From assembly GCA_964188305.1 (NCBI GenBank), contig OZ076886.1: 64,000 bases of DNA; one strand, given 5' to 3'. Position 1 is the stretch's first letter; the number at the start of each line of letters is the position of its first letter. Made by a program: the position numbers and the translations under genes. Source of the stretch: Podarcis bocagei (lineage: Eukaryota). Below the pieces are notes generated by a model, which made no database searches, was not told where the DNA came from, and was given only the letters and a program-made list of their open reading frames with translations. Of the stretch, positions 1,066 to 64,000 are shown piece after piece.

Positions 1066-1517
1066 ACCTGAGTGCAGCTTACTCCCAAGTACACAAACAT
1101 AGAATTACAGCCATAGTCCAACTATATTCAGTGGGATTTAATTGTGAGTAAGTATAGCTAGGATTGCAGAATGGTTGCCAATGCATGTTGGAATAACTTG
1201 AGAAATTGGTGTTTCAGATATTTGCTTCTTGCGTATGGTCACCTAATTCATCCACACAAGGGTGTGACTCAAATGTACACAAGTTGTATGTATACTGTAT
1301 ACCTTTCTTAAGATGTCTCATTTCTCAGTCCATTTTGGATGTTCTCATAAGGCCCTCTCCTTTTATGATCCCAATGCATTACAGTGGTACCCCGCAAGAC
1401 GAACGCCTCGCGAGATGAAAAACTCGAAAAACGAAAGGTTTTTTCGTTTTCGAGTTGCCTTGCAAGACGAATTTCCCTATGGACTTGCTTCGCAAGACGA
1501 AGCTTGCCCTGCAAGCT

Positions 1518-2030
1518 CCGGGGACAGCGGGTCTTCCCGCTGTCCCCGGACCTCTTTTGAAGCAAGGGGCGGCGTGGAGAAGCGATCTCCCCGCAGCCCC
1601 TTGCTTCAAAAGAGGTCTGGGGACAGCGGGGAAGAAGCGATCTTCTCCCCGCAGCCCCAGGTCCGGGGACAGCGGGAAGCGCTTCCCACTGTCCCCGGAC
1701 CTCTTTTGAAGCAAGGGGTGGCGGGGAGAAGCGATCTCCCCGCAGCCCCTTGCTTCAAAAGAGGTCTGGGGACAGCGGGGAAGAAGCGATCTTCTCCCCG
1801 CAGTCCCAGGTCCAGAGACAGCGGGAAGCGCTTCCCGCTGTCCCCGGACCTCTTTTGAAGCAAGGGGCGGCGGGGCGAAGCGATCTCCCCGCAGCCCCTT
1901 GCTTCAAAAGAGGTCCGGGGACAGCGGGGAAGAAGCGATCTTCTCCCTGCAGCCCCAGGTCCGGGGACAGCGGGAAGTGCTTCCCGCTGTCCCCGGACCT
2001 CTTTTGAAGCAAGGGGCGGCGGGGAGAAGC
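1518..2030. repeat. GC-rich minisatellite, 149-bp unit x ~3.5, each unit made of three hairpins
   Basis: TTGCTTCAAAAGAGG recurs at 1601, 1750 and 1899. The unit contains the consensus palindrome CCGGGGACAGCGGGAAGC|GCTTCCCGCTGTCCCCGG. Confidence 0.9.
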
Positions 2031-2309
2031 CTGCCCCCGCCGCCCGGCTTTGGAACGGTGCTCCGAAGCCGGGCGGCGGGGCGGGAACACCTTCTGAAGG
2101 TGGGCGGGGGGCGAAAGTCTTTGTCCCCCCCTGCCTGCCTTCCCGGGAGAGCGGAGAAACACAGCGCGTTTCTCCGCTGTCCCGGACGGCTTTTGAAGGC
2201 AGGCGGGGGGGGGAAGACTTTCGCCCCCCGCCCGCCTTCAGAAGAGGTCCTGGACCTCTTCTGAAGGCCGGCGGGGGGGCAAAAGTCTTTGCTCCCCCCG
2301 CCTGCCTTC

Positions 2310-2640
2310 CCGGGGCAGCGGAGACTTCTCTGCTGTCCCGGGCGATCTTAAAATGCTGGCGGGCGGCAGCGAAGCCTTCGCTGCCAACCCCCAGCATTTT
2401 AAAAGCCCCCGGGGCAGCGGAGACTTCTCTGCTGTCCCGGGCGATCTTAAAATGCTGGCAGGTGGCAGCGAAGCCTTCGCTGCCGACCCCCAGCATTTTA
2501 AAAGCCCCCGGGGCAGCGGAGACTTCTCTGCTGTCCCGGGCGATCTTAAAATGCTGGCGGGCGGCAGCGAAGCTTTCGCTGCCGACCCCCAGCATTTTAA
2601 AATCGCCCCGGGACAGCGGGGGCTTTTAAAATGCTGGCGG
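2310..2640. repeat. Minisatellite, 99-bp unit x ~3.3, two hairpins per unit
   Basis: ATGCTGGC recurs at 2353, 2452 and 2551. Stems are TTAAAATGCTGG...CCAGCATTTTAA and CCCGGGGCAGCGGAGA...TCTCTGCTGTCCCGGG. Confidence 0.9.
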
Positions 2641-3949
2641 TCGGCAGCAAAGCCCTCCTGTCCCCGGAGCTTGCGGGGCGGGAGGTGGGGAGAAGGGCTT
2701 TTCTTCCCACCGCCAGCCTTCAGAACAGCCTTCTGAAGGCTGGCGGTGGGAAGAAAAGCCCTTGTCCCCCCCCCCCAGCCTTCAGAAGAGGTTGGGGGAC
2801 AGACTGTCCCCGGACCTGGTCTGAAGGCGGTTTCCCTAGGAACGCATTAATTGATTTTCAATGCATTCCTATGGGAAACCGTGCATCGCAAGACGAAAAA
2901 CTCGCAAGAAGAAAAAACTTGCGGAACGAATTAATTTCGTCTTGCGAGGCACCACTGTATAAGGAGGAAAGGAAAATGCTGGAAATAATCTGGTTCTCAA
3001 AGATACATTGTCATTTGTGAATCACTGTGCAACATACTTCAGCAGCATTGTGAAATGAAAAGTATCCTTTTAATCCATTTAATATAAGGGTCAGGTTTAT
3101 GATGAGTCATTAAACTGTGCACTTCTGCAATGACTCAGTCTATGTGTGTGCAAAACAGACTCCAGAGAAGGGGACTGTACAGCCCTGTATTTGAATGTCA
3201 AAATCAAAGGACTGTAGACACTTGATCATCTCAGTGTTAATTTTTAAGCATTAGCCTTGGGGGGGATATTTTCTTTTTAAATTAAATATCAAGAGATCAG
3301 AGCATCTTTTACTTTTAAAGATTTGACCCTTGAGCTCCAATTAAAGCTACTTTAGAAACACTGAGCTGCTGTCAAAAATGGGAGCCCCCATGTTAAGTTC
3401 TTTCTATTGTTCTGCAATGAGCGGTATCACTTGCTCCGTGTTGTGACATGATGATGTTAATGTGTTCCCAATAATATGAAGATCATGATGGCCGTTCTTC
3501 TTATGAAGGAGGAGAATTCAGATGAGGACTACTATTTAGGGGGCAGGGTGGGGTGGGTGGCAGCCCTGTGTTTAATCATAATGTCTAGTTCTTCCCTTAG
3601 AGGGTTTACAAAATGTTGCCTTCATCAACCTGCTTGAAATAATGCACAAATTGGCTTTTGCAGGATGTTATCTCCCACCTTACCCATCAATGTTTTCATC
3701 TTAAGAAATGCCTGAAGCTCCACTAAACATTTTGCTGGAAAAGATTTCATTCTTTGTGCAAAATCTTTCTGGTAATTAATTCACTTTTATTTTTTAATTA
3801 GGAAAGCATTCTATCACCTCAGGGAGGAGTGAAAGTCACAGAGGCAAAGGAAGTTCCAATGACTCATAGGCCTGAATGCTTCAAATTGTGCGCTGCAGGA
3901 AACAGAAGCGACTCCTTTGATGCAGATCAGAGGGGGGCACAGGTGAACA

Positions 3950-13708: not shown

Positions 13709-14530
13709 AATGGACTTTTGGTCTGCCCCACCTGGGGAGATTTTCCAGTTTTTTGTGGCTTTGTTTCACTCTTGTGTGCTCTGCGGTGATTCCAACCCAG
13801 GGTTATATATCAGTCTAATTTCATGGAAACACTGATGCAGATAATGATCATAAGAAGGATCAGGCAAGTCCTAGACATGCATTCTGTTATTCCATAGTGG
13901 CCAGCTAGATGCCTCTGGAAAGTTCATGAAGATGATCACGGCAATAGCCTTCTCCCATTATTGTTCCCTGATGACTGGTATTCAGAGGCATGGCCTTATG
14001 TTTCCCCAAGGCCCTCTTGCCTCAACATTTGTTTACCATTAGCAATCTGATTAGAGATGGCTGTAAATGACCTTCAAGTCAAATACGCAACAGAGTGCTC
14101 CTGCTTCCAGTGTCCCAGCTATTGATTGGGATCATTGAGAATATTCATACTGCTATTAATAACAGAGTGCAGCTTTTGGGATTGATTTTCAACATTTTGC
14201 CTCACTTGTCTTGCCCTTAAGTCCATTTTGGAGCTGCCCTACTTCTGCAAGAAGCACAAGGCTTGGCACTGGTGTCTGTCCAGGAATGCATCCTAAAAGG
14301 AAAGCATGAATAATGAGTAGGAATAAGGCAGAAGTTTAAAAATGAGCTGATACTGAAAAAGGTTTAGTGTCCTGCAAGGGCATGTAGTGTGCCAGACACA
14401 GAGAGATAATGATCAATGGTCTGATTCTGAAAATCACCAAGTGGCCTTTGATGAGCAGGATGAGGAATTCACTGTCATTCTTGGGACCTTTCCACTGGTT
14501 CACATGATGAAGAGGCACAGCGTTCTTCTA

Positions 14531-14758
14531 CAGTGGTACCTCGGGTTAAGAACTTAATTCGTTCTGGAGGTCCATTCTTAACCTGAAACTGTTCTTATCC
14601 TGAAGCACCCTTTAGCTAATGGGGCCTACCGCTGCTGCCGCCGCTGCACCACTGCATGATTTCTGTTCTCATCCTGAAGCAAAGTTCTTAACCCGAGGTA
14701 CTATTTCTGGGTTAGCAGAGTCTGTAACCTGAAGCGTCTGTAACCCGAGGTACCACTG
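14531..14758 (+). mobile_element. pogo/Tigger-like MITE, subfamily B
   Basis: TA flanks and perfect 18-bp TIR CAGTGGTACCTCGGGTTA. Strand is an arbitrary reference orientation. Confidence 0.92.
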
Positions 14759-15318
14759 TAGTTTATAGAAAGTTTCAGGCATCACCAGTGAGGACTTTGT
14801 GAAGATGGCTAGTGTGGTGGAGCTGGCAGCATTCTGTCTCATCCCAAATAAGTGTTCCCATCACAAAGGTTTGTTTTGAGTGTGCAGTCTCCCCCAGCCC
14901 AAATGTTAAAAATATTGATGCAATGAATTTTAAAACCTCCAATATTCCAAGGCTTGCATTTCCTTGTGATTTTTCTTTCTTTTCATGGGACCGTGTAGTT
15001 TTTGTCTCTTAATTGCCAAAGGCAGCAGTGGTCTGTAGAGCTGGTCTGAAAGCTTTTCCTTAGTAATATGGGAAAGGCTTTTAGTCTTGGAAACAGAAGC
15101 ACTGGGTTCTGCATTCTGTACAGATTTGGTTCACAGATGGAATAGCAGAGCAACAGGTTGCCACCCATCTATTCCAGACAGCGTGGCAAAACATGTCGTA
15201 TGATTGGCAGATATTTGTCTTTTGTTCTGTTATTGGCAGAAGGCATTTTATTGGGGAACTTATCTGCAATAGCTGTGAGGTTTTCTTTAACCAAAATTGT
15301 GTGCCTTGTCCTGACATA

Positions 15319-17713: not shown

Positions 17714-18570
17714 GGATTATTATTTTCTAGATTCATTTCAATCGGGGTTTAGGCCTGGTTTTGGCACAGAAACTTATTTGGTTGCCCTGTATTATGACCT
17801 CTGTCAGAAGAGAGACCAGGGAAATGTGTCCCTGTTAATTCTCCACAACCTCTCTGCAGTTTTCAATACCAACAACTGTGGTATCCTTCTGGTGTGGCTG
17901 TGTCAGGGGGTGGTGCTTTGTGATCGTCCTACTTGGCTGTTTGTTTCCAGAGGGAGATGCCTGGGGAGGGCTCTTCGGCCCCATGGAGCCTTCAATGTGG
18001 ATTTCCTCAGGTTTCAGTTTTATCCCCCATGCTGTTTAACATCTACATGAAACCACTGAGTGTGGTTATTCAGAGTTCTGGAGTACCTTGTCAGCAATAT
18101 GCTACTGACACACAGCTCTACTTCTCCTTTACATCTGCAGGGGTGGCAGTGAATGTGCTGGGCCATTGTCTTGCCTTGGTAATGGACTGGATGAGAGCCA
18201 ATAAACTGAAGCTCAGTTCAGATAAGACTGACTCACTGTTAGTGGGCAGTTCCCTAGACTGGATGGATGGGAGGTTGCCTGCTCTTGACGGGGTTATACT
18301 CTCTCTGAAGGAGTGGGTACATAATTTGGGGATACTTCTGCATCCTTTGCTGTTGCTTGAGGCTCAGGTGACCTCGGTGGCATGGAGTGGCCTTTTCTGC
18401 GGTGGCTGCCCATTTGTGGAATTCTCTCCCCAGGGAGACTCGCCTGGCACTTTTCATTGCATATCTTTGGGTTCTTGGTAAAAATGTTTCTCTGTAACCA
18501 GGCCTTTGGCTGATTAACATTCTATGGCCTGTTAAATGTGTTTGTGGGGGGGGGTGTTAATGGTTTTTTA
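17714..18570 (+). mobile_element. L2-clade LINE reverse-transcriptase fragment (decayed) plus 3' remnant
   Basis: FLDSFQSGFRPGFGTET..VAL, LLILHNLSAVFNT, GFPQVSVLSPMLFNIYM, QYATDTQLY (YADD degenerated) and WMRANKLKLSSDKT. Frameshifted. Confidence 0.9.
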
Positions 18571-27636: not shown

Positions 27637-29440
27637 GGTTTGGTGACTGTAAGCATCTGCAGGCCATGGGAGAAGTACCAAGTGCAAGGCACAGAGTGAG
27701 TCCACCAGGCAAAGTGAGGCGGTTGCGTCAGGTGGTAGATGCTGGTGTGTGTGTGTCAATAGCAGCAGCCCCCATAATTCCCCCTGGGTGCTTCTTAAAC
27801 ATGGATAGGATTGAACCTCACAAGTAATTCCTCATGCAGAAAAGCAGCCAAACATGGAGCAAAGCATGCATAAGCTCATAGAATATGCTGAGGCTCATGG
27901 TAATACCCAGACCTGGCCCTGGCTTGGTTCTTTGTGCTTTGGGGCCTTATACCTTTGGGAAAAGCAGGCAGGCAGCACAGTCACATATATTACATTTGTT
28001 CTCTCTTCTGATCTGAAGCACTTATATAAAGCCAGTTCTGTTCAGGGATACTGTGTACCTTGAGACTGTGTGTGTTTGTGTGTGCATACACACACATATG
28101 CACAAACACACAAACTATTTGCTGCTCCGTCTACTGTAGCAGAATGTCTTGGCTAGCCCAAAACAATATTAGTGCAATATGATGCCCAGGTGTGGAACAA
28201 CTCAGTTTGGGCGTTAAGTCACTCTTCCAGTATAGCCTGTTTAAACTGGACCACCAAATTCACTTCCATATAGAAGTCACAAATGCAGGTTTAATTTCTG
28301 TTAAATTAGCTATATGCTAAATGGATTACTCCTGCATGAGTCGGCGAAAGTATCTGGTTGTCATGGGGAGTAGGAAACCAAAGTTAAGTGATTATGTAGC
28401 ACAAATAATAATTGTTTGGATAAGAAAGTAATAAATGGCAAAACCTCCTGTTGTTATGTGTCAACATTAGCCTGGGATTTTTATTTACTTATTAAATCTT
28501 CCAAATTATTGCATCACTCCAAATGTATGTATCATTCTTTTTACACATTTTCTTCTTCCCATCCCTCCTTCCCTGATTTTTTTAAATTCTCCCTTAATAG
28601 CTGCATTAAAACAGATCTACATTCATTTTCTAAGCCCCCCAAATCCATTCTCTAAATTCTTCGGTTGCTCATATCTCAAATCCTGCATGTAATTTTATAT
28701 AAGAATGAAAATTTGATAAGTAGAACATTGGCCTGGGATTCTGTCCTGACCTCTGAAACCATGTGGTAATCACAGAAGCCTTGTCATCCAGTGCTTGACT
28801 AGCAATGAAAAGTAGAGGACTAGATAGGTGTGTGGCAGGGGGGAGGGGTCTTAGAGTTTTCTGTTCTCATCATCAGCAACATATTTCTTACAAATAAGCA
28901 TCAGCTCACAAGGTTTTTTCATGCATCTGGAAGAGGGAGCAGTAATGAGAAGCAGAAGGAGAAAGCATAGAGACGCTGCTTCTTTAATTAGCTAGCGTGG
29001 CAGATGCATGACTGATCAGAAGTCCAAGAGCATAAGGTATCTTGCAGCCTCGGACACTGATAGCCACTGAGTGAGATCATCTGCAATAATTCTTTCCCAG
29101 AGTGAAGGTTAAGGAGTCCTCCACCCAGCTCCCAAAATAGATTTTCTGTTGAAAACCCAGCTAGTTACACTATTTCAGTATCACACAGCCACTTCTTGCT
29201 ATTATGAGATGAGAATTAGCGACTAGTTAGATCATCTTATCTGGGTACTTTGGGGTCCCCAGAGGGAATCTGATGTGACTATGAACTGGGATTTTGTTTT
29301 GTTTTTTGCTAATTGTCGAAATGTAAGCCTTAGCCCACCCCTCTCCACTCAGTGGACTGTGCTAACAGGCTATCCAAAGGAGTGAGTTTTTCATAAGGCA
29401 AGTTACCTTGTTTATAGCTGCAGAAGTAGAATATAAAGTA

Positions 29441-29641
29441 CAGTGGTATCTCAGGTTAAGAACTTAATTCGTTCTGGAGGTCCGTTCTTAACCTGAAACT
29501 ATTCTTAAGCTAATGGGGCCTCCCGCTGCCGCCACCACGTGATTTCTGTTCTCATCCTGAAGCAAAGTTCTTAACCCGAGGTACTATTTCTGGGTTAGTG
29601 GAGTCTGTAACCTGAAGCGCCTGTAACCCGAGGTGCCACTG
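29441..29641 (+). mobile_element. pogo/Tigger-like MITE, subfamily B
   Basis: TA flanks. Termini CAGTGGTATCTCAGGTTA ... TAACCCGAGGTGCCACTG. Colinear with 14531-14758 apart from small deletions. Confidence 0.92.
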
Positions 29642-31108
29642 TAAAAGCCACCTTGGAGGCATTGGTCCTGCCTTTTTTTTATGCCTCTGAACAGGTGATT
29701 TGTTAACTTTATTGGCAGGCGATGAAAGATGGGGACATAGTTCCCATGGGTGTGAACTACTGGCACAACAATGTGCTGATGCTTTTATTTTTTTTAAAAA
29801 AAATAAATAAATCTGTGGCTGGCTTGTGGTTTCAAGGAGTGAAGGCTGAAGGTGGAACTCCATTACCAGCTTGTTTTCCAGACATCAGACAAGCTGGATG
29901 GTGGGACCTGCCTTTCCTGACCAGATTCTTTAACACTAGAGAAGCATATTTTTTGCCATACCTTTTCAAATAATTAATATACTTTATGTAGCAATAAAAG
30001 TTCTGAGCTGTTGCCTTAGAACAATCTCTTTAGTAAAGGGTGGCAATTCCAAGGTCGTTATAGTGGTGGCATAAGCATTGACTGTATTTGGGAATCGGTG
30101 GCATGCTTTTGAAAAAGAAACCCTTGAAGTGAGCTTTTGTTCCTCAGTGGAGGGAGCAAGTGTGTGAGTGTCATGGAAGTCTTAGAGGACCAGTCAGGAA
30201 GCTAGACAATAACTTTATATTCTGTCTTCAACAAAAACAGCAATGGGAAATTCCTGATTTCACCCAGATACAACTAAGCCCAATGCCATCTAGTGACTTG
30301 TCTATATAATTATCCTATCCACCATGTATGTACATTAGCACTTTGTGAGCCAGGACCTCTTTATGTAGCTGCCTGTGCTGGGAGACCTGATTTATGCAAC
30401 CCTTTCTAGCCCACACAATGCCTTGGAAGCGGTGGAGAGGATCATTCACCACAGAATAATGATGGAATGAAATGACCCGTTCCTTTGTACATCCTAACTT
30501 TGCCACACAGGTGGCCCAGAACAATCTGTTCAGTTGTCATGTACTTGTACTTGAGGGAACTAAAGGACAAACGTAATTCTCTGCCACATGCTACAAGCAA
30601 TCGTGGTAATGCATGCAATAAGCTAGTCTTAAAAATTAATCTTGCTGCACGAAGCACTATATTTGGGAAAGACTTTTCAGCAGTCTCCACATGGGAACTG
30701 TAATATTTAGATCTGTGCTAAGGCTGCCAAGTAATGGGAACAGGAAGTTGCAATTTTTACTGAATAATTCCCGCTTCTAGGTATTCAGTACTGTATAGAC
30801 TTTCTGAAAAGGGGAGAAAATGTCATTTCATTGATAATTTCCATGTCTAATTAGTTGGTTACACAAACAACCAAAAACCTTATTTGCCAAATATGAAGTT
30901 AACTGAAGAGGGCCTTAAATTTTTCATTAACTATGAGACAGAATTCCTAAGGACCTTCTCAGATGATGAGAATTTAGTAGTACAATAAACACATAGTTTA
31001 TATACATTTGTTGCCCACAGTCTACACATCTCCCTATGAGGTTCCTCTGCTTCTGTCACAGGGTTATGAGGGTTGTATTTTGTGCCTGGAAAAACATGAT
31101 TATTTCCT

Positions 31109-43559: not shown

Positions 43560-43921
43560 CAGTGGTGCCTCGCAAGACAAAATTAATCCGTTCCGCGAGT
43601 CTCTTCGTCTAGCGGTTTTTCCGTCTTGCGAAGCAACCCTATTAGCGGTTTAGCGGATTAGCGCTATTAGCAGTTTAGCGGCTATTAAAGGCTTAGCGGC
43701 TATTAAAGGCTTAGCGGATTAGCGGCTAAAAGGCTATTAGCAGCTTAGCGGCTTAGAAAAAGGGGGGGAGCGGGGGAAAATCGGAACACTTGCAAGACGT
43801 TTTCGTCTTGCAAAGCAAGCCCATAGGGAAAATTGTCTTGCGAAGCAGCTCAAAAACGGAAAACCCTTTCGTCTAGCGGGTTTTCCATCTTGCGAGGCAT
43901 TCGTCTTGCGGTGCACCACTA
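43560..43921. mobile_element. pogo/Tigger-like MITE, subfamily A (opposite orientation to 1382-2957), with internal (TTAGCGG)n-type tract
   Basis: TA flanks. Left end CAGTGGTGCCTCGCAAGACAAAATTAATCCGTTCCG matches the right end of 1382-2957. The last ~130 bp match the reverse complement of 1382-1515. Confidence 0.9.
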
Positions 43922-46407
43922 TATCTGACCATTCCCTTTGAGCTGGTTCATATTTTTCACTGTACATCGGTTTAGGAGCTTGCCTTTCCAATGCTATAAA
44001 ATTGTAGAGAAACAAGTGCCCAGAACTACACTGATGACTTGTTCATAGTTCCCACATCCATTCCCACTGATGTATGGAGTTTTTCTTTCAAATAATAATA
44101 TGGATATTGACATGCAGTGAAATCGTCAGCAAAACCATCTGTCAGTGTAAACTGACCCATTATAGTTTACAGAGTTTTATTAGGGCATCTTGTAGTCTCC
44201 ACTGGTCTGTGGCACTTTAGGAACATTCAGCTATAGGTGGAAGTTTATTACACAGCTGCTTTGGAGAGTTACAGTAGAGGGAGGGAAGAATGGAAAACTG
44301 GCTACAGCATAATGCTTCCTCCCTTCCTGATGGAGGATAAGTCTATCAGTGTCTACTCGCCCCAATGGCTATGCAGTCCCAGAAGAGGATGCTGGACATG
44401 ATGGGCCTTTGACTTGATCCAGCAGAGTTCTTCTAATGTTCTTTTTTTTTACAACCAAGAATTAAAACTGAGTTATGAGAGATTGTCCTACCAAACACCC
44501 ACTTAGCACATTTTTAAAATCTGTTTTCTTGGCCTTCAGGGGAAACAGAAGCAAGATCTAGTTTTGTTTTCCTCGCCTGCTAGAACTGGGCCTTGTTTCA
44601 TGAAATTAAAAATGGGTAGGGAAGAAGCGGGTGGAATTCAACAAAGGAAACAGTATATGCAGCAGCTTCTGCAACATTCCTACAATGTGAGGTCTTTCCT
44701 TGTTGGCTCTCAGTTGGGAGTGGATTGTCGGACCAGAAAATAGTATAGTTCAGAAATGCTGCTTGAGCTGTGCCGTCGCTGGTTGTTTTGCTACAAGGAT
44801 GAAAACACAGAATGCATTTGGTCGTAAACTTGGTCTTGCAAAATGTGCCCCTGAGAAGGACATTGTGGATTGGATCCTTTGTCACTTGTCCAGGGATAAA
44901 GGCAGCGACATGTCAGACACACCCAAGGATGCTGAATGCTGGTTGCCGAAATGCTAGAAGAACAGGCTTGGAAAGATATGGGCTTAAGTTTAATTATATC
45001 AAATGCCCAAGTGGGTGCAAAGTGCTTGGCAAAGCAGGCAAAGACGTATTCTGTTCTCAGAATGGCCTTACAATTGGATGACTTCACTCTCCAAATCTTT
45101 ACTCGTAGGAGGTCACAGGCAGCACTGAAGATAGTTTTTCATGTAATGACAAATGCGTAGGGAGAATTCTTGTTCTCCTGCCTGCCAATTTTTTTTCTTT
45201 TTTTCTGAGGACAGTAATGTGACCCTTTGGGAAACTTGAGTATGATGATTTATTATTAAAAATATGCAGCCATTTGAGGGCCCCTACCTTGCCAAAATGG
45301 AGTGGGTTTTTGGCTCTTCAAAGAGCAAAAACACGCCACATGAGTAGGGCATTTAAGAGATTGTATCTCCAATGTTAAATTAAGAACTACAACAGCAGCA
45401 AAATAAATCAAAGGACTGAGCTGATATTCTCCATGTTCTGGGAGAGGGTGGCCAAAAAAGAATGAAGTCTCAGAATGTATCCTGAATATTTCTATACCTG
45501 TGGATCCTCCTTAGAACAATAGTGAGGGTCCAGCGTGAGTGTGAATGGCTACCACTGTCTCCAAAGGTTCTTTTCCATCCTTCAGATAAAGTTGCTTTGT
45601 GCCTTGTCCTATTTTTGGTTGCAAGTAGATGGCATTACTGTTTCCATATTTGGGAATGTTTGGCTCCAGGGCTGTTCTATCTTGCACTGACATCGTGACC
45701 ATGCAAGTTCATCAAAGGGTATGTTCAGACATCACGAATCTCTACCAAATTGGCTCCCTGTGCTAATTTTGTAAATGCATGTTTGCTGGGGGAAAATGTT
45801 TCCGCACAGCTATATAGTCAGGAGTGAAGAATCGTTTCTGGAAAGGAGGAGGAAAGCTTAGAAACGGAAATGTTATAATCTGAATTCTGCAATTGGCATA
45901 TATGTCTTTTTCAGTCACAAGTTTAATTCACCAAAAGGTGCTTTGGGGGGGGGGGAAGGTGGTTGATTCTCTGCGGTGTCTTAAGTTGGGTGGAACCTGG
46001 ACGTAGGTATGGCAAGCTATTATCATACTGCACCCACATATCACTACTGCACATCCATTTAAAAAGTATTTCAGAGTTTGAATATCAGTTGATATAATAG
46101 TTGCCAGCACTCCGTTGACTACCCTCAATCTAGCTCAACATTGTTTAAAGCAGGAGTAAGTCAGATGCCTCTGGGACCTTTACAAGCAGAGCATGAAAGC
46201 ATCAGTTTCCTTCATTGTTTGCCTTCAGTGTCTGATATTTGGAAATATATTGCTGTTTGATGATAGACGTTAATAGCTGTCGATAGACCTATCTCCCATA
46301 ATTGTTTCCTAATTATTTTAAAATTAAACATCTAAGTCAGCGCCAGCATATCTACTGGCTTCGAATTATATGGTAAATCATGTGTGGAAAAAGTTCTTCC
46401 TTTTGTA

Positions 46408-46628
46408 CACTGGTACCTCGAGTTACAAACGCTTCAGGTTACAAATGCTTCAAGTTACAAATTCCGCTAAGAGTTACCTCGAGTTGAGAACTTTGCCCCA
46501 GGATGAGAAGGGAAATCGTATGCCAGCGGTGCAGCAGCAGCAAGAGGCCCCATTAGTGAAAGCACGCCTCTTTCAGGTTAAGAATGGACCTCCAGAACGA
46601 CTTAAGTTCATAACTAGAGGTACCACTG
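46408..46628 (-). mobile_element. pogo/Tigger-like MITE, subfamily B (more diverged)
   Basis: TA flanks. Termini CACTGGTACCTCGAGTTA ... TAACTAGAGGTACCACTG. Confidence 0.88.
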
Positions 46629-47160
46629 TATTGGGTAGTCACGGATTTTGTCGCAGCAATGTAACAGCCTTGCTGTAGCTCATAGTTCTATCTTATCTCC
46701 ACATTTGAAGTCTGCTTCATCACTCTACATTTGTAAAGCAGAGACCTTGTTTCCTTCTTTCTTACAGGTGGTTAAGTACATGCACATTAAAGCACGAGTA
46801 CTATGTGATTGGATCAGGCCATTATGCCATATAACATGACCAAATGATTTTCACTGGGATCAGGAACATAGGATGCTTCAGAGCAAGTATGCAAAGAATT
46901 CAGCAGTGATGGAGTGACCTATTTGTAACAGGTGCTTAACAAACGAGGGTGCATTGCCCTTTCATTTGACCAATGCATGCTCATGCAGCTTTGTGGCATT
47001 ATTTTTTCTAGGCACTGGATTATAAAGAAAAAATGGGTTAGTGTGGAGAGAACTGTTTGTACATCAGTGTCAAGGAGTCCTCAACCTGCTTTTTTCTAAG
47101 ACACATTGCTTGCGAAATTTCTGGTGTTATACCACTTTGGCTGTCCATAAGACCTCATGC

Positions 47161-60635: not shown

Positions 60636-61011
60636 GTAATAATAATAATAACAACTTTTTTATTTATATGCTGCCCATCTGACTGGGTTGCCCCAGCCAC
60701 TCTGAGTGGCTTCCAACAGGATATTAAAAACACAATAAAACATCAAACATTTAAAACTTCCCTATACAGTGGTACCTCAGGTTAAGCACTTAATTTGTTC
60801 TGGAGGTCCGTTCTTAACCTGAAACTGTTCTTAACCTGAGGTACCACTTTAGCTAATGGGGGCCTCCTGCTGCTGCCGTGGCGCCGCGGCGCGTTTTCTG
60901 TTCTCATCCTGAAGCAAAGTTCTTAACCCGAGGTATTATTTCTGGGTTAGCGGAGTCTGTAACCTGAAGCGTCTGTAACCTGAGGTACCACTGTACAGGG
61001 CTGCCTTCAGA
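60636..61011 (-). mobile_element. L2-clade LINE 3' end interrupted by a pogo-like MITE
   Basis: Matches 720-870. AAAACTTCCCTATA|MITE|TACAGGGCTGCCTTCAGA restores the sequence seen at 837-867. Confidence 0.85.
60767..60993 (+). mobile_element. pogo/Tigger-like MITE, subfamily B
   Basis: TA flanks and perfect TIR CAGTGGTACCTCAGGTTA. Confidence 0.93.
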
Positions 61012-62161
61012 GCTCAATTGAACAAAGTAGACTTAAGCTCCAAGGAAGCAAGCACAGAATTGTGCTACAAACCTGCAGACCTATGTACACACATCTTATA
61101 ATAAGCCCTGCTGAATGAAGCAGGACTTCTGAGTAAACATACATAGGAACCTGATACACGTTATACAACAGACCAAAGTAACAGGGTTGGGTTTATTTTC
61201 CCTAGGTAGTTTTCTCTCTCTCTCTTTTGAATGCCCATATGAATGGCTAGCTAAATAGCCAAAAGATCCTTGGAGATGAGTCTGGAGGAGATGCCCGTCC
61301 ACATGACTATCACTGATGTGTATGCATAATACTGGGGTACCACCTAAGCTTATATTTTAATAAACCTATGGTGTTTAAGGGATGGTGGTGGTAGTAGTAT
61401 AAAGGCAGAACAAAAGGCAACTTTCAACCTGTGATCCTATACATCAAGGTTTTTGTCTAGAATAATATGCACAGAATAGCCCCATCTTGAGTGCAGTATA
61501 AATTCACAAAAAAGATCGCACTTGTATTATAATTGTGTTGCAGTCAGCCTTATGGATGGGTCACAGAGCTTCGAGCACATTAGGACGGCCTGAAACTAGG
61601 CATCAAGGAGCTCCATGAAGTAAGAATGCTTGAAAATGGCAACTAAGTGTGTGCTTATACAAAACAGGAGAATCATTTCACAATGAACTCCTAAGAAACT
61701 CACATTTCAGGAGTAAACATCCTTGAAATTGACCTTACTAGGAATGACTCAAGAGAATAATAGAGGGGCAAAATTACCCTTGACTGAATAAAGGAAACAG
61801 CAGGCTCATAGAAACACATACGCCACTGTGGTGTTAACTATTGCAGTAAAACAACAACCTGTAAGGTTTGGGAGACTCTACATATGCCTAGATATTTTGT
61901 CACATTTTTAGAAGACTAAAGTAGTAAGATCTGTTGTATAATCTGAGGCAGCTGAATAAAATGACTTCCCAGAGTATATTTTAATAGTCACAGTAGATAC
62001 ATTTGATTTTCTGGAATTAGAAGCCATTATTTTACCTAATGGTTGTGTAGCATACATAATGTTCAGCCTTTCAAATCATCACCCAGCTGCCTAACAGGGA
62101 GCAGGAAACTTCTACCAGCTTTTAGCCTTTCTTAAATTCTACCCCTTTTGTATTCTTCATA

Positions 62162-62403
62162 CAGTGGTACCTCGGGTTACATACGCTTCAGGTTACATAC
62201 GCTTCAGGTTACAGACTCCGCTAACCAAGAAATAGTGCTTCAGGTTAAGAACTTTGCTTCAGGATGAGAACAGAAATCGTGCTCCAGCAGCGTGGCAGCA
62301 GCAGGAGGCCCCATTAGCTAAAGTGGTACCTCAGGTTAAGAACAGTTTCAGGTTAAGAACGGACCTCCAGAACGAATTAAGTACTTAACCTGAGGTACCA
62401 CTG
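62162..62403 (-). mobile_element. pogo/Tigger-like MITE, subfamily B
   Basis: TA flanks. TIR CAGTGGTACCTC[G/A]GGTTA. One extra copy of the subterminal GGTTACATACGCTTCA unit. Confidence 0.93.
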
Positions 62404-62468
62404 TACTTACTTCCACTGAAGAAAACTGTTCTTGCTATGCTTGTATACTAATGGTTTTACAAAGGTAG

Positions 62469-63049: not shown

Positions 63050-64000
63050 TTGCAAAGCGGATTCTTTCCTGCAGACGTCGACGCGTTGTTTGTATATCGC
63101 ATGCAGTAGGGGGCGGGAGCGGGGAATCACAAGGTTAGCAAGGACCACGTGGGTGGCATTTAGCGGGGCGAAGGCTCAGGTGTGCTTAAAGAGCACGCCT
63201 ACGCTGGCGGGATGGAGGGTTGCAGCGCGTTGTAGAAGCGCCCTAAAGCTGGCGTCGTAGCCACGAGCTTCGGTAAGGAGGTGTAGGTGAAATGTACAAA
63301 GTGGGCTGTTGACACGGATCCAGCCTCAGGGATGCGGGTGGGCTGGGTGACCTCTGAGCACATTCCAGCTCTCAGCCATTCTGCCATTCGCCGTAGCTTG
63401 CCTTTGGCTTCGAAGCCATTCACAGTGCACTGCCTCTCCCCCTCGACGTCTCCCACCTGCCTCCCATATGCATTTATCCGTAGTTTGGGGGGTGGGGTGC
63501 AATTCTCCTTTTTACTTGCTTCGAAGCGGGCTGCCCCTACCCGCAAGCAGGGCCCCAGCCCGCTTTAGAGGGCCACTCGTCGGCATGCTCCTCTACCCGG
63601 ACCCGCTCCCGTTGCCGCCGCGCGCATTGTGACGGCACAGGCACCCCTGCTGCCTGCCTCCTCCAGCGTCGCCGCCCCCGCCCTCAATCCCGCCTTACGT
63701 AGGCTGGGCAGGCCGGCCGGCTGGCTGGCTACTGCCAACTTTCAAACAATGCGTGCATGGCGGGCTCCGCCCCGGCTGGGCGGAGACGAGGGCTGGGCTC
63801 CGAGCCCTCGGCCAACCCTCCGGAGGCGGCCCCGGCCGCGGGGAGCTGGGGGCCGCTGCTGACTCGCCGGGGCTGCTTCAGTGCCTGGTTCGGGGTTAAG
63901 CGCAGGGGAGACTCGCGAGCCCCAGCCGAGCCAGCGGAGCTGGCGGCGGCCCCCCCTCCCTCTCCGCCCCGGTCAATGGCCCCTCGGAGCGCCGCCGCGC
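63050..64000. promoter_or_regulatory. CpG island / probable promoter, continuing past the window end
   Basis: Abrupt rise in GC and CpG density in non-repetitive sequence. GC boxes at ~63109-63117, ~63765-63774 and 63961-63970. Confidence 0.85.

Follow-up and report, generated by a model that had tools for sequence, protein, structure and literature searches.

The window analysed here, a 64,000-nt stretch of contig OZ076886.1 from the genome of the lizard Podarcis bocagei (assembly GCA_964188305.1), carries at positions 1382 to 2957 an element that is flanked by TA dinucleotides, ends in short terminal inverted repeats (TIRs) and encloses a chain of GC-rich hairpins, two stretches of which are arranged as tandem arrays (Table 1). 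Very likely, this element is a non-autonomous cut-and-paste transposon of the Tc1/mariner superfamily that belongs to a family of MITEs (miniature inverted-repeat transposable elements) from Podarcis, and its interior is a non-coding passenger, a hairpin chain that was recently re-amplified. It provides a clear case from a lizard, and so from a vertebrate, of the interior of a small DNA transposon turning into tandem repeats. Within this one element, old and diverged hairpin modules lie beside two fresh amplifications, and sister copies of the family hold other states of the interior.

Table 1. Coordinates of the element at 1382-2957, of its parts and of related elements in the window; S and L are the two kinds of hairpin described in the text, and chassis denotes the ends common to the family
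Feature	Position	Strand	Description
Whole element	1382-2957		1,576 bp; TA on both sides; short TIRs
Left TA target-site duplication	1380-1381		flank ...GCATTA, then CAGTGG
Left TIR	1382-1403	+	22 nt; starts CAGTGGTACC
Left family chassis	1382-1515	+	84-86% identity to the reverse complement of 43793-43920
Inner inverted repeat, left arm	1507-1527		20/21 complementary to 2658-2678; brackets the variable region
149-bp tandem array	1514-2030	+	about 3.5 units; S hairpin, L hairpin and shorter third hairpin per unit
Middle stretch of single-copy hairpins	2031-2308	+
Hairpins of the middle stretch	2035-2081; 2089-2142 (L-type); 2143-2185 (S-type); 2190-2245 (L-type); 2256-2309 (L-type)		palindrome centred at 2251 before the last
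99-bp tandem array	2309-2619	+	3.1 units; one S and one L hairpin each
Partial unit	2620-2657
Inner inverted repeat, right arm	2658-2678
Long hairpin	2676-2780 (mirrored modules to 2788)		50-nt arms; two adjoining L-type modules in mirror orientation
Last S-type hairpin	2790-2822
AT-richer hairpin	2828-2880		adjoins the right chassis; fold z -7
Right family chassis	2876-2957	+	85.5% identity to the reverse complement of 43560-43635
Right TIR	2936-2957		lies within the right chassis
Right TA target-site duplication	2958-2959
Second family copy (copy B)	43560-43921	-	362 bp; TA flanks; found with the TIR pattern
Five TA-CAGTGGTACC MITEs	14529-14760, 29439-29643, 46406-46630, 60765-60995, 62160-62405		200-250 bp; 16-bp subterminal motif GGTTACATACGCTTCA or a variant

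The ends of the element define a transposon family

The two TIRs begin with CAGTGGTRCC and match at 20 of their 22 positions. The mismatch at TIR position 11 (C at the left-type end, T at the right-type end) recurs in a second copy in the window, copy B, and is thus a trait of the family rather than a sign of decay; once it is set aside, a single private change remains in the TIRs of the element. In copy B itself one TIR has decayed to TAGTGG. The ends of the two copies can be aligned along about 126 bp, at 86% column identity, and along about 82 bp. By blastn they are 84% identical over 119 bp and 85.5% identical over 76 bp, and by nhmmer they match with E values of 1.6e-24 and 2.3e-13. Between these ends, copy B carries a minisatellite of the TTAGCGG type (8-18 bp) and none of the S or L hairpin modules that fill the element. 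The recurrence of the same ends at an unrelated site and around a different interior indicates a transposon family and not a one-off structure. The family is defined by its pair of ends, a left one of about 130 bp and a right one of about 80 bp; both bear the CAGTGGTRCC repeat and several copies of an 11-nt motif, CGCAAGACGAA.

In the left chassis this motif lies at 1393, 1461 and 1491, and weaker copies, spaced 16 bp apart, lie at 1409 and 1425. The same chassis contains a local hairpin at about 1421-1456. The motifs of the right chassis, at 2887 and 2903 on the plus strand and at 2936 on the minus strand, fold into a terminal hairpin. Both ends of both window copies hold several such motifs, in part 16 bp apart. 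Most likely they are binding sites, here putative, of a transposase supplied in trans.

The longest open reading frame (ORF) of the element, 329 aa, runs through the interior. Because this ORF is derived from the repeats, contains no Pfam domain and has as its sole database relative the translation of a sister copy, the element has no coding capacity. The relative, the only one retrieved in a word-based protein search, is a 232-aa "uncharacterized protein" of Podarcis muralis (UniRef A0A670HY40_PODMU, hereafter P0001). Over residues 111-217 this protein shows about 93% identity to frame +3 of positions 2621-2942 (tblastn), a segment that includes the hairpin with the 33-bp stem, in which one residue is changed; residues 33-92 match positions 2207-2386; the N-terminus reads the left chassis; and the translation extends almost to the right TIR. 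Judged from these alignments, P0001 is the read-through translation of a third family copy, from another locus in P. muralis, and the "uncharacterized protein" appears to be a spurious gene model. For annotation, it exemplifies the long spurious ORFs to which such interiors give rise.

An earlier reading of this stretch, made from the letters alone and called here the sequence-only reading, had described a non-autonomous DNA transposon bounded by TIRs and TA dinucleotides. The TA flanks, the pairing of the TIRs and the recurrence of the ends in copy B and in P. muralis support that description. The terminal 130 bp, by which it had suggested collecting further copies, proved to be conserved on the left (about 126-134 bp), whereas on the right only about 82 bp are conserved.

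Placement within the Tc1/mariner superfamily

The TIRs of Tc1/mariner elements typically begin with 5'-CAGT or 5'-CAGG, and a TA duplication followed by a 5'-CAGTGG end is compatible with any clade of the superfamily. The element combines a TA duplication, TIRs, a lack of coding sequence and the occurrence of the same ends at unrelated sites, as is found in non-autonomous members of this group. Membership in the pogo, Tigger or Tc2 clade requires the ends of an autonomous element with a pogo-type transposase (CENP-B-like DNA-binding domain, DDD). The sequence-only reading had called the element pogo-like; such an assignment needs a partner transposase and cannot be made from ends that fit any Tc1/mariner clade.

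Several points weigh against the identification of the element as a trans-mobilised MITE. No transposase, and no autonomous partner, was found in the 64-kb window, so that mobilisation in trans is an inference, as is the part assigned to the 11-nt motif. At 1,576 bp the element is long for a "miniature" one, MITEs usually being under about 800 bp; its excess over the 362 bp of copy B is due to the amplified interior. Only three copies were compared, of which one is available solely as a translation and is possibly spliced. Finally, the arrays may have grown at this locus or may have been inherited from a master copy.

Further searches added no copy. The word-based protein search gave no relative for an 85-aa ORF of the array, and P0001 retrieved only itself. 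Exact protein look-ups with P0001 and sixteen window ORFs covering the interior, junctions and flanks yielded neither a further copy nor an orthologous site. Exact DNA scans with the TIR and with the S palindrome found no occurrence in collections of metagenomes, prokaryote genomes and viruses, which barely hold lizard DNA and are uninformative on copy number. Within the window there is no paralogous empty site: the flanks adjoining the insertion match nothing else there, and the only repeat matches of the element flanks lie 300 bp or more upstream. A literature search found no paper on this lizard MITE family; a paper on Zootoca deals with a different Tc1/mariner-like fragment (PMC10058329).

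The interior is a chain of two related hairpin modules

Inspection and folding reveal a simple grammar in the interior, which consists of two related kinds of GC-rich hairpin in succession. The S hairpins have arms of the GGGGACAGCGG / CCGCTGTCCCC type, and the L hairpins enclose a core of a G-run and a C-run between arms of the type CTTYTGAAGG... / ...CCTTCARAAG. Folded as single-stranded DNA and compared with dinucleotide shuffles, the segments 1507-2040, 2031-2310 and 2300-2830 gave z values of -25, -17 and -23, respectively. Tandem Repeats Finder (TRF) called two arrays, one of 149 bp x3.3 at 1533-2030 and one of 99 bp x3.1 at 2309-2619, each with 95% matches. The first array begins at 1514 and comprises about 3.5 units when a variant first hairpin (S0, 1514-1553) is counted in. 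Each 149-bp unit holds an S hairpin (the 44-bp palindrome), an L hairpin (arms of 45-47 nt, 5-nt loop) and a third hairpin that resembles the apex of L, and a single unit folds into these three hairpins with a z of -14; a single 99-bp unit folds into two, with a z of -8. The palindrome at 1659-1702 is loopless over its 44 bp and has one mismatch. In the long hairpin near the right end, the stem 2693-2725 / 2731-2763 is paired at 33 of 33 positions around the loop CAGCC. The AT-richer hairpin that follows the chain is nearly unchanged in the P0001 translation and absent from copy B.

Most of what the sequence-only reading had described in the interior was recovered in this way: a 149-bp unit repeated about 3.5 times with three hairpins each, a loopless palindrome of about 44 bp with one mismatch centred at 1680/1681, a 99-bp array with two hairpins per unit (3.1 units by TRF), a perfect 33-bp stem with a 5-nt loop, an inverted repeat bracketing the main array (20 of 21 positions complementary), and an interior that is strongly self-complementary as well as rich in GC and CpG. 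The statement that all modules reuse the words GGGGACAGCGG and CCTTC[A/T]GAAG was too broad. The first word occurs 12 times in the element, against 0.36 occurrences expected in the whole window, but the 99-bp units contain it in variant form only; the second, CCTTCWGAAG, is found nowhere but in the middle and on the right of the element, and both arrays hold diverged versions of it.

The interior modules match one another on both strands (nhmmer, E 1e-5 to 1e-22), with local alignment scores between modules that exceed those of shuffled sequences (z 3 to 25), and they match nothing else in the 64 kb by nhmmer. These observations indicate that a single module family was duplicated hierarchically, rather than that a mosaic was assembled from foreign pieces. 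They bear on the possibility that the 149-bp hairpin repeat was captured, as a pre-existing satellite or borrowed module copied into the family MITE, in the manner proposed for Xenopus miDNA4 in the account given by a recent review (PMC12628747). Capture would account for the absence of the 149-type module from copy B and from P0001, but the remaining modules of the element are paralogues of the 149-bp unit, which has the S word in common with the inner inverted repeat, a feature of the family. Inspection found neither the internal ends nor the target duplication of a nested insertion, and no free-standing array lies elsewhere in the 64-kb window. We consider such a capture unlikely.

A nested transposon delimited by the inner inverted repeat itself was also considered as a candidate and rejected: no target duplication is found next to the arms, the left one overlaps with the family chassis, and P0001 contains the two of them.

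Order and kind of the duplications

The units of the arrays are 94-97% identical in pairwise comparison, which indicates that the amplifications are recent, and these recent events are direct, with units placed head to tail. The mismatches between the arms of the L hairpin are identical in all three 149-bp units; the hairpin therefore preceded the tandem amplification. On both grounds the arrays are tandem amplifications, as the sequence-only reading had held. Inverted duplication occurred as well. The halves of the palindrome centred at 2728 show 90% complementarity, rising to 100% across 33 bp, and 66% likeness as direct repeats, and at centre 2251 they are 91% complementary versus 34% alike; high complementarity combined with low direct-repeat likeness shows that sequence was copied in inverted orientation at both places. 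Since the 2728 palindrome is also present in P0001, the event took place in an ancestor of the family and not at the locus 1382-2957, and the hairpin modules, which P0001 likewise contains, are older than the element.

The three copies differ in their interiors. Both arms of the inner inverted repeat can be read in P0001, where they lie about 300 bp apart versus 1,130 bp in the element. The source copy of P0001 has fewer, truncated and roughly single 99-type units and no 149-type module, being known as a protein only that may be spliced, and copy B carries another repeat altogether. P0001 also differs from the element by deletions that remove the apexes of hairpins.

These results can be set against the proposal that attributes the interior to fold-back or template-switch synthesis, repeated during the repair of excision gaps and followed by tandem amplification. 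Many stems have loops of only 0-5 nt, inverted duplication is evident at centres 2728 and 2251, differences between the L hairpins of the 149-bp and 99-bp units are mirrored in both arms on inspection, the deletions in P0001 fall at hairpin apexes, and hairpin-based models have been described in the literature (PMC12628747, PMC3879986). That the modules arose by fold-back is plausible. Arm-to-arm complementarity was compared with identity between module types under free end gaps, which inflate the identities; this comparison is not decisive, and across module types it is not clean. The order implied by the proposal, with fold-back first and tandem amplification later, is a fair outline, but the fold-back step predates this copy of the element, as the palindromes are common to another copy and so were not made at this locus. 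Moreover, nothing links the events to excision repair over ordinary replication, in which slippage at hairpins would suffice, and the recent events are direct head-to-tail duplications rather than inverted ones. Models of either sort have been published (PMC12628747, PMC3879986). As a complete account of the interior, gap repair by fold-back is a possibility, although a doubtful one.

The history that we favour, a transposon family whose passenger interior was recently re-amplified, can be sketched as follows. Older duplications, some of them inverted, gave rise to several diverged versions of the S/L pair, which further family copies already share. Along the line of descent of this element, two of these versions then multiplied head to tail, giving 149 bp x3.5 and 99 bp x3.1. 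The likeliest route of this amplification would be slippage during replication, or repair that was unequal or misaligned, between repeats prone to form hairpins. To judge from the pattern of substitutions, CpGs have since started to disappear from the units through methylation-driven deamination. The element is best read as selfish DNA with a palindromic interior that is intrinsically unstable and for this reason variable between copies. The family can thus be used as a natural series for the study of repeat growth driven by palindromes and of the birth of satellites from transposons.

A more far-reaching idea concerns the hairpin pair itself. The S/L pair might be a self-propagating palindromic cassette that multiplies within the MITE and that template switching in the course of repair can also carry from one MITE family to another whose ends are unrelated. 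On this view lizard MITEs would serve as the vehicles of a mobile hairpin satellite, which may yield hairpin RNAs if it is transcribed. We regard this as decidedly improbable.

Palindromes and short arrays are prone to error in assemblies, which raises the question of whether the structure stems from the assembler or from chimeric long reads. The units bear distinct substitutions, mostly CpG transitions, as real diverging copies would, the sequence contains no Ns, and the same modules recur in the same order in an independent sequence from another locus, that of P0001. An artefact of assembly is barely credible in the light of these features.

CpG content and methylation

The interior, taken for composition as 1510-2830, contains 65% GC and has an observed/expected (o/e) ratio of CpG of 0.71, compared with 42% GC and a ratio of 0.22 in the rest of the window. 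With a length of 1,321 bp it has the composition of a CpG island (over 200 bp, over 50% GC, CpG o/e over 0.6). In the chassis of both window copies the ratio lies above 1.1, and in five other MITEs of the window it is 0.59-0.70; the high CpG content is thus not special to the interior.

The units of the arrays differ from the unit consensus at 14 of 792 compared positions. Eight of these differences fall among 135 CpG positions and six among the 657 positions elsewhere, a 6.5-fold excess at CpG (Fisher p 7e-4), and all eight of the changes at CpG sites are from CpG to TpG or CpA. Such a bias is the footprint expected of methylated cytosines. From this pattern the array looks young and methylated, not unmethylated. 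The preserved CpGs had been taken in the sequence-only reading to mean that the element is "young or unmethylated"; its youth agrees with the 94-97% identity of the units, while the CpG excess, made up entirely of TpG and CpA changes, speaks against the second alternative.

The same data are relevant to a possible function of the element, as a mobile CpG island or regulatory module or as a source of hairpin RNA or small RNA. The island-like composition (1.3 kb, 65% GC, o/e 0.71) and the extreme predicted folding would be in keeping with such a function. The pattern of CpG decay, however, indicates methylation, and neighbouring MITEs have similar CpG ratios. None of the ten unit differences in the 149-bp array forms a compensatory pair, so that there is no sign of selection for pairing, though the time span is short, and an Rfam scan of the window matched no family. 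A functional role is very improbable, and no host function is indicated for the element.

Comparison with other repeat-bearing transposons

MITEs with tandem repeats and hairpin-based models of their growth have been described (PMC3879986, PMC12628747). Frogs, bivalves and flies have already provided established cases of the principle, to which the element adds a lizard family. As in other tandem-repeat MITEs, its central repeats are enclosed by flanking modules that bear the TIRs.

The Xenopus Tc1/mariner MITE miDNA4, as summarised in the review (Scalvenzi and Pollet, via PMC12628747), contains an internal satellite that is found either as a single monomer or in arrays of differing copy number; its growth is put down to errors of replication or repair. 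Going by that summary, the two are alike as vertebrate Tc1/mariner-type MITEs with a repeat-bearing interior. The element differs from miDNA4 as portrayed there in having two different arrays, each unit of which is a set of GC-rich hairpins, and in showing neither AT-rich microhomology beside the arrays nor a derived free satellite within 64 kb; no free satellite array related to the interior was found in that span. The same review reports on Xstir and Xmix of Xenopus, tandem repeats that arose from MITE internal sequence and for which a stem-loop expansion model was put forward (Hikosaka and Kawahara 2004, via PMC12628747). According to this report they are of a different superfamily and sequence, and Xstir forms long lineage-specific arrays outside elements.

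In the DTC84/pearl elements of bivalves and the DINE-1/PERI-type elements of insects, the ends act as a "cassette" that encloses at most about five core repeats, each about 150-160 bp long; every repeat contains a palindrome, regarded as a hotspot of length change, and every copy differs (PMC3879986). Their target duplications are AA, a microsatellite flanks them and an affinity to Helitrons is possible, in contrast to the TA flanks and CAGTGG end of the present element, and they are palindromic at one site only, whereas here the palindromic structure takes in the entire unit. Foldback elements and Tetris of Drosophila are, in the review's brief account, dominated by self-complementary tandem subrepeats and able to seed satellites (PMC12628747). 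The long TIRs of Foldback elements are, on that account, themselves built of subrepeats. The element has TIRs of 22 nt, and its arrays are internal, direct and different from one another; long TIRs made of tandem subrepeats, the mark of a foldback element, are not present.

Other MITEs and features of the window

Seven elements with TA-CAGTGGTNCC ends occur in the window; related MITEs of the Tc1/mariner type are evidently abundant in this genome. The five listed in Table 1 represent the common squamate CAGTGGTACCTCGGGTTA... MITEs. They resemble the element in their TA flanks, in the first 10-13 terminal bases and in the plan of a 16-bp subterminal tandem motif. They differ from it in the motif itself, GGTTACATACGCTTCA versus CGCAAGACGAA, in their smaller size and in the lack of hairpin arrays. 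The right chassis of the element gives a faint nhmmer match to 14531-14612, and the MITE at 60765-60995 contains an additional internal end-like site at 60840.

Three further features of the window were recorded. An ORF at 17933-18481 encodes a reverse-transcriptase domain (Pfam RVT_1, E 2e-9) and is presumably a fragment of a long interspersed nuclear element. The segment 54800-55600 is strongly strand-asymmetric (GC skew +0.5, AT skew -0.4; G/T-rich plus strand) and overlaps a 184-aa minus-strand ORF for which Pfam gave no match; the segment may represent a retroelement in antisense. At the right end of the window, 63200-64000 reaches a GC content of 60-75% with dense CpG, and an ATG at 63977 is followed by a GC-rich open frame. 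This region is probably a CpG-island promoter together with the first exon of a gene that runs off the window.

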